A program made the translations under genes and the position numbers. From IMG/VR virus record IMGVR_UViG_3300047319_001872, positions 186,001-250,000 of that record: a DNA stretch of 64,000 nt; one strand, given 5' to 3'. Below are positions 1,859-32,006 of this stretch, one piece after another. The notes beneath the pieces are model-generated. The model had not been told where the DNA came from. It saw only the letters and a program-made list of their open reading frames with translations, and made no database searches. The stretch's first letter is position 1. The number at the start of each line of letters is the position of its first letter.

Positions 1859-2188
1859 TTATTGCTCGCGCTTCAGCTTCATTTCCGTCTTGAAGGCGAT
1901 GTGCTGCAACTGATCAATCGGGAACGCTTTGGTCACAACCTTCTTGACCACGTCCGGATCAGTGAAGAGGTACGCACCCTTATCGAGCAGGATACGCTTG
2001 CGACGTAAGTCCACTCGGGGTTTCGCATCCGCGGTCGAGAGCGGCTGGTTCGGCACGAGATCGATCGTGACTTTCAGGCCGAGCTCATCAGCGAGCTCCA
2101 ACAGTTCGCGGGCTTTGGTGCGCACCGCCGTCTCAGCGAAAGCATCGGCTTCCTCTTGAGAAAGCACTTTACTCAAAAGCTTCGTCAC
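1859..2188 (-). CDS. Hypothetical protein (109 aa)
   Basis: ORF tiles with neighbours; RBS-like GGGG upstream. Confidence 0.75.
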   Translation of the reverse strand: MTKLLSKVLSQEEADAFAETAVRTKARELLELADELGLKVTIDLVPNQPLSTADAKPRVDLRRKRILLDKGAYLFTDPDVVKKVVTKAFPIDQLQHIAFKTEMKLKREQ

Positions 2189-2191
2189 TTC

Positions 2192-2554
2192 TTATCCCCG
2201 TCTGATGGTGTACTTCACGCGACGCTTGGCTTGACGCTTGAATTGACGACGCCCGTCCATGGCGGTGAGCTTGCGAGCGCGGGGTCCTGCCATGGCGTTC
2301 AGATACAGAAACGCCAAATAGTAGACCGCATCTTCTCCGGTGGTGCCAACGAGTCCCGGAATATCCTGGCTGTAGTAATGCGCCGCATCGAGCGTACGAC
2401 GACAGTCGCGCTGGTACGCATCCAGGAAGACCGTGAGGTCGTTGTTGCGGGCACGCAGCTCGAGGTTCTCAGCAAGCAGCTTATTGAGGCTGCCTTCGAG
2501 GTCTGCCACGATACGTTCGTGGTCGAGCCTGCTCATCGACTCATGGTAGGGCAT
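2192..2554 (-). CDS. Hypothetical protein with N-terminal coiled coil
   Basis: ORF tiling; heptad-like LNKLLAENLELRARNNDL. Confidence 0.75.
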   Translation of the reverse strand: MPYHESMSRLDHERIVADLEGSLNKLLAENLELRARNNDLTVFLDAYQRDCRRTLDAAHYYSQDIPGLVGTTGEDAVYYLAFLYLNAMAGPRARKLTAMDGRRQFKRQAKRRVKYTIRRG

Positions 2555-27898: not shown

Positions 27899-28530
27899 TA
27901 CCGTTTCCTCACAGAGTTGTTACGCAACCATTGAGCCAGTAGCTGCGTGGTCATGAAAGGCAGCTGCGTGATCGCCCGTGTTTTGCCGACATTACTGGCC
28001 GTCAGCTGGTAATGCGTGTCCGCCATCTCGATCACCTTCTTTTCGAAGGGATGGTCGAAATCCGCCAGATCTTTCAGCGACACTTGTGGCGTGCTGAAGA
28101 AATAGCGCGGCAAGCGACGACCACCGGGAAAGACCAACTCAGCGTCTGCGTTGTGACTGATCTTCGCCGGATGGAACGGGTTCTCCTCCTGTTGACGACG
28201 GATGAAGATCGGATCTGCCGTCAAGTGCTTGGATGCCAGGATCGCGCTCGACATCCGTTCGCCCCGACCACCCGGAATCGGCAAGGGGTCCAGCGTCCTG
28301 CGCCGTGAGAAATACTCGATGTCCTCCAACGGGCTATGATACTCACGATAGCGGTAGACGTGATTCAGCACTTCTTTGGAGCACTGCACACCGTACGCGA
28401 TCCATTGCCGGTGGTCCAGATCACGCGCTGCTCGAGGCCGCTTCAACCCCAACAACTTCGGATGGTCAAAGTGGAGGGCCTCGTCGACGATCATCCGAAT
28501 GCTGCGTTCCACACGAGGTTTCTTACTCAT
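27898..28530 (-). CDS. Hypothetical protein (210 aa)
   Basis: RBS GGAG; ORF tiling. Confidence 0.75.
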   Translation of the reverse strand: MSKKPRVERSIRMIVDEALHFDHPKLLGLKRPRAARDLDHRQWIAYGVQCSKEVLNHVYRYREYHSPLEDIEYFSRRRTLDPLPIPGGRGERMSSAILASKHLTADPIFIRRQQEENPFHPAKISHNADAELVFPGGRRLPRYFFSTPQVSLKDLADFDHPFEKKVIEMADTHYQLTASNVGKTRAITQLPFMTTQLLAQWLRNNSVRKR

Positions 28531-28531
28531 T

Positions 28532-29065
28532 TCACTCTCCTTGTTTCTTCTTGAGTTCGTTTACAGCCTTCTCGTGGTCTTCGCGAGCCTGATCGATCTC
28601 AGCAGGCATCTTCTTGTAATCGTCCGGACGTCCGTAGATGTCGAGGATCTTGCGGCGCGCAGCAGCAATCAAGAAAATCTGACGGCGAGCCAGGTACTGG
28701 CTATAGCTCACGTCGCCCGAGCGAATGAATGCCTGCCATTGTTGGCGCGTCCAGGTACGGATTTTCCTGAAGATCTCTGTAGTCTCTTGATGCTGATACT
28801 GGGGCATTTCGACCTTTTCGCCTAACGTCGTGATTACGACATCGAAATGCTTGTTTTCGCCTAACGTCGTGATTACGACATCGAAATGCTTGGATGATAA
28901 GACCGATTGGACTGGCGGCAATTGCGAGATGAAGAAGTCACGCATGTCGCGCTTCCAGCCGGGTACTTTATGCTTGGTTTTATTGATTGCGATACGTTGC
29001 TTGACCTGTTTGCTCAACATTGTAATTCTCCTCGTTGCAATAACGGAAATAAAAAGGAAGTACAC
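28532..29065 (-). CDS. Hypothetical protein containing a 13-aa exact duplication
   Basis: KHFDVVITTLGE occurs twice; real start probably at MLSKQVK (RBS AGGAG). Confidence 0.7.
   Translation of the reverse strand: MYFLFISVIATRRITMLSKQVKQRIAINKTKHKVPGWKRDMRDFFISQLPPVQSVLSSKHFDVVITTLGENKHFDVVITTLGEKVEMPQYQHQETTEIFRKIRTWTRQQWQAFIRSGDVSYSQYLARRQIFLIAAARRKILDIYGRPDDYKKMPAEIDQAREDHEKAVNELKKKQGE
28815..28892. repeat. Exact 39-bp tandem duplication
   Basis: TTTTCGCCTAACGTCGTGATTACGACATCGAAATGCTTG at 28815-28853 and 28854-28892. Confidence 0.95.
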
Positions 29066-29071
29066 CCAGCG

Positions 29072-29097
29072 GAGGAGCTCCCCGTAGGAAGCTCCTC
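29072..29097 (-). terminator. Hairpin after the 29110 gene
   Basis: GAGGAGCT/AGCTCCTC 8-bp stem; CGTA (UACG on the minus strand) in the loop. Confidence 0.6.
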
Positions 29098-29109
29098 GAC
29101 TTGGCTTAC

Positions 29110-29667
29110 TTAGCTTTGTGCAGCAGCGAAGCCTGCCGTCTGGAAGCCGTCGCCTTCAGCCTGCTGTTTGCGCAGGAACGCAGGTACTTCGACGGCGCTG
29201 TAATCACGCCCGCTCGTCGCAGCGGCGGATGCCATCGCGGTCGAGACTGCGGCTTCCGCTTCGGCCGCCGACGTGCTACCCAGGTTCATGTGCAGCGCCT
29301 GGCGACCATCGACGAGTGCCGGAGCCTGACCGTGTTCCGCCATGATGGCCAGAACGCGCTTATGCGCAGCCAGGGCATCGGGTTCCGCGGACTCGATGAC
29401 CGAACCGTACTTGGCGAGTTCGAGCGGGATGAAGCCCTGCGCTTGCGCTTCCTTCCAGATGTGCGCGAACAGGCGATGGTTCAGCGGCAACGGCGTCGTG
29501 TGACCCTTCAGGCAGAAGATCACTTCCTTCTCGATGATGCCGAGCGAACGGTTGCTGGCGATCAGACGACCATGCTCACCAAAGTACGCGGCTTCCGTGT
29601 GGAAAAGGATTTCCAGTTGTTCGATTTGGATTTCTTTGGAACCGAAGATTGCCTTGATGATACCCAT
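29110..29667 (-). CDS. Hypothetical protein with Ala-rich linker and FtsZ-C-terminal-peptide-like motif
   Basis: RBS AGGAG; ...SAAATSGRDYSAVEVPAFLRKQQAE... Confidence 0.8.
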   Translation of the reverse strand: MGIIKAIFGSKEIQIEQLEILFHTEAAYFGEHGRLIASNRSLGIIEKEVIFCLKGHTTPLPLNHRLFAHIWKEAQAQGFIPLELAKYGSVIESAEPDALAAHKRVLAIMAEHGQAPALVDGRQALHMNLGSTSAAEAEAAVSTAMASAAATSGRDYSAVEVPAFLRKQQAEGDGFQTAGFAAAQS

Positions 29668-29760
29668 TTTGAAGCTCCTTGTTTAAGTTGTAAAAGACTA
29701 TTGCGATAAGTGGGCTAGTGTGTACAACTACTAACGCGTGCCCGTAGCGTCAGCATTAGA

Positions 29761-29928
29761 CTATCCTTTCAACTGAGAGCAGATGAGCCGGATCAGCGGA
29801 TAAAGCGCCAAGCTAATGGGGGCGACTGCCAGGAGCAGGTAGAGGACCGCGCCCCTTACCCAGCCCACTGAGTCGCCCGACATGTAGACGCGATTCTTAT
29901 CGCGTTCGTACAGTTGACGATTGCCCAT
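29761..29928 (-). CDS. Small membrane protein (55 aa, MGNRQLYERD...), not in the ORF track
   Basis: Hand translation; TAATG coupling; single TM. Confidence 0.6.
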   Translation of the reverse strand: MGNRQLYERDKNRVYMSGDSVGWVRGAVLYLLLAVAPISLALYPLIRLICSQLKG

Positions 29929-30242
29929 TACTTGTCATCCACGTGAGTGAGCTCACCGCTGACGTTGCAATTGTTGCGGCCATCCATGCGCACGACCGTG
30001 TTGAAGCTATCGGGCACGGCGATCGCGAGTTCCTTGAGCTTCTTTTCGAAGTACGCCCAATCGCGGCAGCCTGCGGCCTGATCGTCATCCAGGTTCGAGT
30101 AGATGCGACCTTCCATCTCGTCGTCCTCGGGCGACTCATCCTGCTCAATCACCAGGAAGAATTGCTGCAGGGGATAGTCCCAGCCAGCGCGAACCGTGAT
30201 AGCATCACCAAAATGCTGCGTCTTGTAAACATGCTGCATCAT
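29928..30242 (-). CDS. Hypothetical protein (likely start 30242)
   Basis: RBS AAGGAG; VRAGWDYPLQQFFLVIE. Confidence 0.75.
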   Translation of the reverse strand: MMQHVYKTQHFGDAITVRAGWDYPLQQFFLVIEQDESPEDDEMEGRIYSNLDDDQAAGCRDWAYFEKKLKELAIAVPDSFNTVVRMDGRNNCNVSGELTHVDDK

Positions 30243-30326
30243 GTTCTCCTTGATCAACCACAATCGGGGGCATCGTAGAATGAATCCACCCGATAAATTC
30301 CATTTAGGGCATAAAAGCAAAAAGAG

Positions 30327-30358
30327 CCTGGCGGGAGACCGAAGCCTCAGCCGCCAGG
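30327..30358 (-). terminator. Hairpin with UUCG loop followed by TTTTTGCTTTTATGCC
   Basis: CCTGGCGG...CCGCCAGG outer stem. Confidence 0.65.
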
Positions 30359-30384
30359 TAAAGTCGCTTAACGCCCCCTACAAA

Positions 30385-30477
30385 TTACATCTTTAAACGA
30401 GTTGAGATCAACCACACGACGAGCACGCCCAAAGCGACGCCCCATTCGATGGCCCACTTCTTCCAACGCGGCGGCAT
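30385..30477 (-). CDS. 30-aa membrane micropeptide (MPPRWKKWAIEWGVALGVLVVWLISTRLKM)
   Basis: RBS AAGGAG before ATG 30477; one TM. Confidence 0.55.
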   Translation of the reverse strand: MPPRWKKWAIEWGVALGVLVVWLISTRLKM

Positions 30478-30487
30478 GCCAGACTCC

Positions 30488-30787
30488 TTAATGCAGAGTG
30501 ACAGAGGGTACACGCTGTGCACCACAGGATGCCTTTGCATTGTCGAGGATCTGTTCGCCGAATACGAGTGCCTGGTCAGCCAGGTCTTTGAGCAGATTGA
30601 GCTCACCCTTCATCTGGTCGGGGATCGCATCACCCAACAGATTGAAGTGTTCACGGATTTCTTGAGCACGCGCCATCGTGAGCTGCAGACATTCAGTCAC
30701 TTCGGTGAGGTTCACCGGACCAAAGACGATGTAGTGCTTCAGGCGGGCGATTTGAGCTTGTTGCATGGTAAACTCCTCATTGATCAA
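30488..30787 (-). CDS. Hypothetical protein, first gene after an early promoter
   Basis: ORF of 99 aa; alternative start MQQAQ with RBS GAGGAG. Confidence 0.7.
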   Translation of the reverse strand: MINEEFTMQQAQIARLKHYIVFGPVNLTEVTECLQLTMARAQEIREHFNLLGDAIPDQMKGELNLLKDLADQALVFGEQILDNAKASCGAQRVPSVTLH

Positions 30788-30828: not shown

Positions 30829-30845
30829 GCTAGGTTTGTTATATA
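30829..30845 (-). promoter_or_regulatory. Candidate early promoter TATATAACAAACCTAGC
   Basis: One mismatch to the 26430-26446 site; intergenic, after a hairpin. Confidence 0.7.
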
Positions 30846-30875: not shown

Positions 30876-30899
30876 GAGGCGAGCCCGTAGGCTCGCCTC
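30876..30899 (-). terminator. UACG hairpin ending the structural operon; tail TATGACG
   Basis: GAGGCGAGCC-CGTA-GGCTCGCCTC perfect 10-bp stem. Confidence 0.75.
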
Positions 30900-30920: not shown

Positions 30921-32006
30921 TTAATCCAGCGTAAAGGGAGTAGTCGGTGCCGTAAAGGCACTCGTGTAACGGGCGACATTGGAAACGCGCACTTCGTCCA
31001 TTTTACCGCCTGCCAAACCCAGGTTCAAACCATTGGTCCAGTTACCCACACACAGGGCGTTGGTATTTTGACCGAACGGCAGACTAGAGGTCGCGGTAGC
31101 GAGTGATACGCCATTTAACCACAAGGTGACCGTGGTGCCGTGCTTGGTGATCGCCACGTGATAACGGGTACCAGCCACCACATTAGACGTCACCTGGATA
31201 ATCGGTGAATTGGTGCTACCCAATGAAACGTAGAACTGACCGTTGTAGTGGTCGATATACGAACCCGTGCCCTTGGAGAAAACGACTTGAGGCGTAGCCG
31301 TGCTGGCCAGTGCCAGGAAGAACTCAATCGTGAAATCTCCCGTCAACTCCAGCTCAGGCGCATCGGGCGTCGTAACATAACTCAGGGCGTCATTTGAGGT
31401 GTACGAAGAAGTTCCGATCAACGGGCTGCTGGTGGTCAGCTGTGCCGAGCCGCCTGGCGTCATCGGGTGACCCGCTGCATCCGTAAAGACCGTGCTGCCG
31501 TTGCTGCCCTCAAAATGCATCAAGAGCACGGTCTTAGGTGGTTGCCAAGCGACGGTAATATCCGTCGAACCGTCCTCGTAGATCAACGAACCGCTCGCCT
31601 GCAAGGTGACAGTTTGGTTGCCTGCTGTGCCTTGTGGAGTAAAGCTCGGTGCTGAAATTTCTGAAGGAATGAAACCAAAATACTGACTCACAGCTGCCAG
31701 CGTGGCGGCCTTACTCGTACCCAACTGCACCGGTACAGGACCTGCAGGGCTGGCAGCCTCAGCAGCGAGTGTCAGCCGTTTATAGGTGACATCGACGCTG
31801 CCTGTAAAATTCGCGTAACTGCCCTGAGGGCCAGTGCCCGTCAGGGTGACCTTAGTATCAGCCCCATTCGGGAAACTACCGGTCGTCACGGCGCTTACTG
31901 TCACTTCGTTAGGAAGGTTCGGTGCTTGCGCATTGGAGGCATCAATCAGCGCAAGCAGATTCTGTACTGCGCTTTTTGTGGGGTCGATTTTCATTCGGGT
32001 CGCCAA
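30921..32006 (-). CDS. Tail fibre/tip paralog (YxR-type domain) + C-terminal LamG/ConA-like domain
   Basis: NLLALIDASN...TYKRLTL; VLLMHFEGSNGST...GDFTIEF...MDEVRVSNVARYT. Confidence 0.8.
   Translation of the reverse strand: MATRMKIDPTKSAVQNLLALIDASNAQAPNLPNEVTVSAVTTGSFPNGADTKVTLTGTGPQGSYANFTGSVDVTYKRLTLAAEAASPAGPVPVQLGTSKAATLAAVSQYFGFIPSEISAPSFTPQGTAGNQTVTLQASGSLIYEDGSTDITVAWQPPKTVLLMHFEGSNGSTVFTDAAGHPMTPGGSAQLTTSSPLIGTSSYTSNDALSYVTTPDAPELELTGDFTIEFFLALASTATPQVVFSKGTGSYIDHYNGQFYVSLGSTNSPIIQVTSNVVAGTRYHVAITKHGTTVTLWLNGVSLATATSSLPFGQNTNALCVGNWTNGLNLGLAGGKMDEVRVSNVARYTSAFTAPTTPFTLD

Follow-up and report, generated by a model that had tools for sequence, protein, structure and literature searches.

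The window analysed here is a 64,000-nucleotide stretch, bases 186001-250000 of a 313,315-bp IMG/VR virus record (IMGVR_UViG_3300047319_001872) that has direct terminal repeats and a GC content of 56%. On its minus strand, positions 29110-29667 contain an open reading frame of 185 codons that begins seven bases downstream of an AAGGAG Shine-Dalgarno sequence. The gene and the elements of its product are arranged as follows.

29110..29667, minus strand: complete gene for a 185-amino-acid protein (ATG at 29667, TAA at 29110-29112)
29675..29680, minus strand: Shine-Dalgarno sequence AAGGAG, within the AAACAAGGAG context
29392..29667, minus strand: N-terminal alpha/beta domain (residues 1-92, folded core about 15-90; PHROG 19581, function unknown)
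29206..29391, minus strand: disordered Ala/Ser/Glu-rich linker (residues 93-154)
29164..29205, minus strand: motif 1, DYSAVEVPAFLRKQ (residues 155-168), resembling the FtsZ C-terminal peptide, with the core EVPAFLRK at residues 160-167
29119..29157, minus strand: motif 2, EGDGFQTAGFAAA (residues 171-183), a second conserved tail motif

The first-pass annotation had described a globular N-terminal part, an Ala/Ser-rich flexible linker (STSAAEAEAAVSTAMASAAATSG) and a mimic of the FtsZ C-terminal peptide (DYSAVEVPAFLRKQQAE), and this observation held: both strings are present as written. Residues D155-E171 correspond to nucleotides 29155-29205, 16 residues follow Q169, and the protein ends in GDGFQTAGFAAAQS. 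An AlphaFold2 model of the whole protein, built with 19 sequences (pLDDT 64), gave pLDDT values of 83-94 for residues about 15-90 and mostly below 50 from residue 91 to the end, including all of residues 116-153. The architecture of a folded domain of about 90 residues, a flexible linker of about 60 residues and a tail is thus supported.

The N-terminal domain matches PHROG 19581 (E = 5.1e-17; protein residues 8-94 against profile positions 10-96 of 108), the only PHROG hit. A Pfam scan of the protein found no family at E values up to 1, so that neither the tubulin-type GTPase domain (PF00091) nor the FtsZ_C domain (PF12327) is present in it, and PF12327 is not found anywhere in the genome. 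The carrier of the motif is therefore not a member of the FtsZ/tubulin superfamily. When modeled alone with a 150-sequence alignment, the domain is predicted with confidence (pLDDT 86, pTM 0.74) as a beta-sheet packed against a helix. However, searches of both models against PDB (Foldseek and VIA-wide), AFDB clusters and the ESM Atlas returned nothing above Z 3.7 or better than E 0.1; T7 Gp2, at Z 3.5, is within noise, and a feature-based Atlas search gave no usable match. A PDB sequence search with the tail gave only a chance hit to parvalbumin.

Upon comparing motif 1 with genuine FtsZ proteins, we found that PAFLRKQ is identical, at 7 of 7 positions, to the FtsZ C-terminal peptide of Burkholderiales and enterobacteria. 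Enterobacterial FtsZ ends in EPDYLDIPAFLRKQAD and Burkholderiaceae FtsZ in DTYDIPAFLRKQAD; the ends seen in Paraburkholderia, Burkholderia, Caballeronia, Trinickia and Cupriavidus read ADYGALDTPAVWRTSRDTAASHVQALQEKGVDTYDIPAFLRKQAD. We scanned one genome per prokaryotic species for DNA encoding IPAFLRKQ, using GC-rich codons, and obtained at least 120 loci. In all 120 sampled, the match is the end of an ftsZ-type gene finishing in [DE]IPAFLRKQ[AN]D-stop, indicating that among these cellular genomes the peptide is specific to FtsZ. In BLASTP of the phage protein against Paraburkholderia ferrariae FtsZ, the two best local alignments both fall on phage residues 146-169 (E values from a single pairwise comparison): one is to the terminal DIPAFLRKQ (7 of 9 identical, 9 of 9 positive, E = 0.009), the other to the upstream segment ASAGATADYGALDTPAVWRTSR (11 of 24 identical, E = 0.017). 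This upstream DYxxLxxP[AS]VWR element is a second, degenerate copy of the tail motif that many beta- and some gammaproteobacterial FtsZ proteins carry about 30 residues before the terminal one. The phage peptide has the DY-to-P spacing of the upstream copy and the PAFLRKQ of the terminal copy, and, as in FtsZ, an aromatic and acidic stretch lies upstream of the core. EVPAFLRK fits the consensus [DE]-[IV]-P-x-[FY]-L-R-[KR] of FtsZ tail peptides, with E-V replacing D-I, and it follows a disordered, length-variable linker, as it does in FtsZ. It does not lie at the extreme C-terminus, whereas FtsZ itself ends two to four residues after the motif. The first-pass annotation had raised the residues following the motif as a caveat; the internal copies in FtsZ itself weaken it. 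In a blastn comparison of the linker and tail against 120 ftsZ 3' ends, DNA similarity was confined to the 14-18 nt that encode the motif, so there is no sign of recent capture from the host gene.

The loose pattern [DE][IVL]Px[FY][LMI][RK] occurs exactly once in the six-frame translation of the whole genome, in this open reading frame. Because by our rough estimate about one such hit is expected, the loose motif alone is not significant. What takes the match beyond chance is the 7/7 identity, the placement of the two FtsZ alignments and, above all, conservation in homologues, which had been named beforehand as the point on which the reading could fail. Eighteen full-length homologues (43-93% identity, some on contigs of 162-327 kb) all keep the motif. 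Across these close homologues and the phage protein (19 sequences), mean pairwise identity is 0.71 in the folded domain, 0.21 in the linker (40% gaps, length 39-76 residues), 0.71 in the motif core and 0.63 in motif 2. P162 and R166 are invariant. The motif is therefore under selection, conserved to the same degree as the folded domain.

A profile search of 1.84 billion representative proteins found 183 family members. Among the 134 distant representatives with a C-terminal extension, 15 carry the strict core [IVL]Px[FYW][LM][RK], against 0.07 expected from shuffles, and 25 carry a looser form, against 0.44 expected; none has it inside the N-domain. The consensus from 50 members is [DE][VI]PA[FYV]LR[KR], whereas the residues that follow (Q/E, A/Q and so on) vary. 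The flanking residues are FtsZ-like too, for example GHDYDVPAFLRKG, GDDLDVPAFLRRG, ATLDIPAVVRRR and ANLDTPAYLRQ, with DYDVPAFLRK, DDLDVPAFLRR and LDIPAVVRRR among the variants seen. Some members carry PAVWR, the betaproteobacterial upstream variant, or PAVFR, and one representative (P0051) has DYDAPAVWR followed by DIDLPVAMR, that is both FtsZ elements in FtsZ order. The motif lies 8 to about 200 residues from the C-terminus; many relatives carry a further domain of about 100 amino acids after it, for which no Pfam family was found. These enrichment counts include related sequences and are not independent. On an N-domain tree, motif presence (46 of 130 rows) needs at least 17 gains or losses, against about 38-40 for shuffled labels, so part of the recurrence is shared ancestry. 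Even so, the motif has been kept while everything around it diverged, and it has been lost or gained many times.

The only isolated phages with a homologue are Burkholderia phage FLC9 (host B. glumae) and the Ralstonia jumbo phages RP12, RP31, FLC1-1B and FLC4-3B; the FLC9, RP12, RP31 and FLC1-1B proteins are all annotated as hypothetical. FLC9 gp303 has both tail motifs (EVPTFLRK and GFKSAGFDAA). By contrast, the Ralstonia phage proteins stop after a short linker and lack both, which shows that the tail is dispensable for whatever the N-domain does. These proteins occupy syntenic positions in related jumbo phages, and distant family members also lie between virion-like DUF7941 or DUF4376 genes and thymidylate kinase, as in RP31, and are therefore positional orthologues.

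FtsZ-type tails also occur in proteins unrelated to this family. Scanning IMG/VR for [DE][VIM]PAFLRKQ gave five loci: a near-identical relative (L130), an ORF with an internal FDIPAFLRKQ (L131), a likely chance hit (L132), the 3' end of a host ftsZ at a provirus edge (L134), and a 68-amino-acid protein (L133:7368-7571, minus strand) that ends in PPDDVPLDIPAFLRKQAD-stop. The contig of the latter looks like a temperate phage, with a serine recombinase, a reverse transcriptase, a MazG-like gene and a DNA methyltransferase. Six homologues of the 68-amino-acid protein all end in D[IL]P[AL]FLRKQAD or DLMMLRKQAD. Scanning for DIPAFLRRQ gave six loci, and in four of them the motif sits exactly two residues before the stop: two homologous 110-amino-acid coiled-coil proteins (L139 and L144), a 72-amino-acid protein (L142) and a 76-amino-acid protein (L143). 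Nine relatives of the coiled-coil proteins keep an invariant LDIP.FLRR after a variable linker, two to five residues from the stop. Of the remaining two loci, one encodes an MT-A70 DNA methyltransferase with the motif 20 residues from its end (L141) and the other has an internal copy 54 residues from the stop (L140). None of these proteins has a Pfam or PHROG annotation beyond the methyltransferase domain. The Firmicute-type tail DIPTFLRNR gave no hits in viral contigs. At least two further unrelated families of viral-contig proteins thus end in FtsZ-type tails, a recurrence that is hard to explain unless the peptide is being used for what it does in the host.

The genomic context is that of a nucleus-forming jumbo phage, as the first-pass annotation had supposed. 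A 663-amino-acid ORF elsewhere in the phage genome (G000:C1:294730-296451) matches residues 43-615 of phiKZ gp54, the nuclear shell protein chimallin, at E = 1.2e-33 and 26% identity, and the only PF00091-like ORF is a separate tubulin/PhuZ-like gene (G000:C1:310751-311215; 31 bits, just under the curated cut-off). Near-identical DNA is present in at least 13 rhizosphere metagenome runs, with no RNA sequencing run among those listed. Judging from the isolated relatives, the host is probably a soil member of the Burkholderiaceae. Candidate receptors exist in likely hosts, as FtsA and a ZipA C-domain (ZipA_C) were found in 3 of 3 Burkholderiaceae genomes searched. One of 401 Burkholderiales genomes carries an N-domain homologue (G309), but that copy lacks the motif and so cannot inform on co-variation with the host FtsZ tail.

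These observations bear on what the protein may do. The E. coli FtsZ tail, DYLDIPAFLRKQAD, is the docking site for ZipA, FtsA, MinC, ZapD, ClpX and SlmA; a 14-residue peptide is sufficient for binding, but the binding is weak (Kd 81 µM for SlmA), and the alleles D373E, I374V, A376P, L378V and K380M resist MinC/MinD while retaining function with ZipA and FtsA (PMC4117426). The E-V of the phage motif corresponds to D373E plus I374V, and the family prefers V to I at the second of these positions (31 against 11 of 50). From this we infer that the copy is tuned to the membrane anchors rather than to MinC. In the explanation we favor, which we regard as no more than about as likely as not, the protein is cytoplasmic and FtsA and/or ZipA would grasp the motif. 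The protein would then either compete with FtsZ filaments for their anchors, delaying or blocking septation and keeping the infected cell undivided around the midcell phage nucleus, or use the anchors to place its N-domain at the membrane or divisome. Because a single tail peptide binds weakly, effective competition would need abundance or oligomerization through the N-domain. A complex prediction with E. coli FtsA, ZipA residues 185-328 and two copies of the protein, run without alignments, scored 0.02, a value that counts neither for nor against binding. We regard the protein as a probable FtsZ-tail mimic. Our analysis establishes the architecture, the sequence identity to the FtsZ tail, the selection on the motif and the recurrence of FtsZ-type tails in unrelated proteins of viral contigs, whereas binding itself, the identity of the partners and the effect on division are inferred. 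The interpretation offered in the first-pass annotation, a mimic that sequesters divisome anchors to block septation or uses them for localization, is accordingly supported only in part, and the data do not decide between its two alternatives.

Other explanations deserve weight. The motif may be an address label that docks the protein on FtsA or ZipA so that the N-domain, or in longer relatives the extra C-terminal domain, acts at the membrane or divisome without titrating the anchors. This possibility, which we hold only tentatively, is compatible with all the data and differs only in outcome. The N-domain is as conserved as the motif and exists without the tail in the Ralstonia phages, indicating a function of its own, and weak monomeric binding makes stoichiometric titration costly. 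On the other hand, no activity can be assigned to the N-domain or to the extra domains from Pfam or, for the N-domain, fold searches, and docking is here again inferred from sequence alone. It is unlikely, but possible, that the motif is instead a degradation signal that exposes the phage protein to host ClpXP or competes for it. The FtsZ C-terminus AKEPDYLDIPAFLRKQAD is listed as a ClpX degron (PMC8138137), and in the unrelated 68-amino-acid family the most invariant part is the extreme C-terminal LRKQAD, which suits a C-terminal degron. In the family studied here, however, the constrained residues are those of the predicted anchor-binding core, and their variable distance from the C-terminus is unlike a terminal degron.

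We likewise consider it unlikely that the motif binds a phage partner or the protein's own N-domain and resembles FtsZ by coincidence, or that it is a functionless remnant of a captured ftsZ 3' end. The chance expectation of about one loose match per genome, the co-occurrence of the motif with the N-domain across the family, and motif 2, which suggests other partners for the tail, speak for the former reading. Against it stand the FtsZ-like flanks, the copies of the upstream FtsZ element in some members and the exact FtsZ tails in unrelated families; the confinement of DNA similarity to the motif gives no sign of recent capture, and the strong conservation next to a diverged linker excludes a neutral remnant.

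Phage interference with the divisome is already known, but the described inhibitors act differently, in line with the first-pass annotation. Lambda Kil inhibits FtsZ assembly in a ZipA-dependent way (PMC3961180), P1 Icd targets FtsZ (PMC11897509), and DicB acts through MinC (PMC4967827). T7 Gp0.4 binds FtsZ. The presumed outcome, interference with the host Z-ring during infection, would be shared with these proteins, but the Pfam and PHROG searches revealed no sequence relationship to them. Full-text literature searches, including for the literal string IPAFLR, found only papers on FtsZ itself and on inhibitors that act differently (lambda Kil, P1 Icd, DicB, CbtA, phiNM1 Gp11 and PA1019 Gp53), and none describing a phage protein that copies the FtsZ tail, although most subscription journals lay outside these searches and an earlier report cannot be excluded. 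Viruses of eukaryotes copy short host docking peptides into disordered regions of their proteins; in the same searches we found no report of this for the bacterial divisome hub.

A broader and more tentative reading is that copying the FtsZ docking peptide is a recurrent, convergently evolved phage strategy. At least three unrelated families of proteins on viral contigs carry copies that follow recognized FtsZ tail variants (this jumbo-phage family, the 68-amino-acid family ending in LRKQAD and the 110-amino-acid coiled-coil family ending in LDIPAFLRR), as do several singletons including the MT-A70 methyltransferase. The tails are RKQ-type, as in beta- and gammaproteobacterial FtsZ, and RRQ-type, the alphaproteobacterial form. 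In this view they would act as decoys or adaptors for the hub that recognizes the FtsZ tail (FtsA, ZipA, MinC, ZapD, SlmA and ClpX), a class of phage-host interface on the divisome that we could not find described. The FtsZ tail is where membrane anchors, positioning inhibitors and a protease all read the Z-ring. A phage-evolved copy would reveal a new way for phages to control host division, supply ready-made probes and inhibitors of the FtsZ-anchor interface, a long-standing antibacterial target, and show, through its deviations from the host sequence (E-V for D-I, Y for F, the extra motif), which partners matter during infection. It would also extend short-linear-motif mimicry to phages.

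Motif 2 has no counterpart in FtsZ and shows that the tail does more than copy it. Its pattern is EGxG[FH]x[ST]AGFxAA, with G174, F180 and A183 nearly invariant, and it occurs in distant members even without motif 1 (representatives P0054, P0061 and P0103). A DNA pattern search for a host counterpart in three Burkholderiaceae genomes gave one hit, equal to the reversed-pattern control.

Upstream of the gene, the first-pass annotation had placed an early promoter motif at 30829, a claim our analysis does not support. The sequence GCCCTATATA occurs once in the window, no promoter-like word is over-represented in the genome, and a sigma-70 scan gave only weak hits that overlap the ribosome-binding site. 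A strongly conserved terminator hairpin at 30319-30358, 90% identical to an FLC9 intergenic region, lies between that site and the gene. The Shine-Dalgarno sequence of the gene lies within AAACAAGGA, the most over-represented non-homopolymer 9-mer of the genome (24 copies against 1.5 expected), and the same context precedes the neighboring genes.

A 68-amino acid protein in a temperate-phage-like contig (IMGVR_UViG_3300044262_000062; locus L133:7368-7571, minus strand) ends in the exact FtsZ tail, ...LDIPAFLRKQAD-stop. Its N-terminus displays a weak CsrA-like match (Pfam E 0.089). Six homologues (P0167-P0172) all keep either D[IL]P[AL]FLRKQAD or DLMMLRKQAD at the extreme C-terminus. In addition, when we scanned viral contigs for DIPAFLRRQ we obtained six hits, four of which place the motif exactly two residues before the stop:

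L144:7228-7557 (+), a member of a 110-amino acid coiled-coil family
L139 about 1968-2300 (-), a second member of the same coiled-coil family
L142:6915-7130 (-), a small singleton
L143:5343-5570 (-), a small singleton
L141:2905-4344 (+), an MT-A70 DNA methyltransferase that carries the motif 20 residues from its end
L140:10624-11088 (-), an ORF with an internal copy

In the coiled-coil family, which comprises nine members, LDIP.FLRR is invariant.

Upon examination of the ftsZ 3' ends (loci L004-L123; for example, L127:3700-4059), we noticed that many beta- and some gammaproteobacterial FtsZ proteins carry a second, upstream tail-like element, DYxxLxxP[AS]V[WMIV]R, positioned about 30 residues before the terminal peptide. 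This element is not known to have an assigned function. Some members of the phage protein family (P0050, P0051 and P0103) copy this variant. In the phage protein itself, a second conserved tail motif, EGxG[FH]x[ST]AGFxAA (window 29119-29157, minus strand), follows the FtsZ-like peptide. It is conserved in distant relatives even where the FtsZ-like peptide (motif 1) is absent, and it has no known partner and no host counterpart that we could find.

The surroundings of the gene display three further features:

window 28817-28891 (-), an exact 36-nt direct duplication inside the ORF 28532-29020
window 30319-30358 (-), a GC-rich hairpin plus T-run
window 30921-32006 (-), an ORF for a 361-amino acid protein

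The duplication has a 39-nt period and encodes KHFDVVITTLGE twice in the gene immediately downstream of the one described here. The hairpin, CCTGGCGG...CCGCCAGGCTCTTTTT, lies downstream of a small membrane-protein ORF and is 90% identical at the DNA level to an intergenic stretch of Burkholderia phage FLC9, although the flanking proteins are only about 50% identical, and is probably a conserved intrinsic terminator. A second hairpin lies at 30876-30899. The 361-amino acid protein gives PHROG hits to the C-terminal parts of very large virion structural and baseplate-wedge proteins. Because it lies two to three genes upstream of the gene for the FtsZ-tail-like protein, the neighborhood is not obviously an 'early' block.

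Among the sequencing runs listed for DNA near-identical to window 28500-30500 there was no RNA run, whereas at least 13 rhizosphere metagenome runs from different studies contain such DNA, as, more weakly, do soil runs. Outside the window, the phage genome (G000:C1) contains a chimallin (phiKZ gp54) homologue (294730-296451, minus strand; E 1.2e-33) and a tubulin/PhuZ-like ORF (310751-311215, minus strand; PF00091, 31 bits), and it is therefore a nucleus-forming type of jumbo phage.
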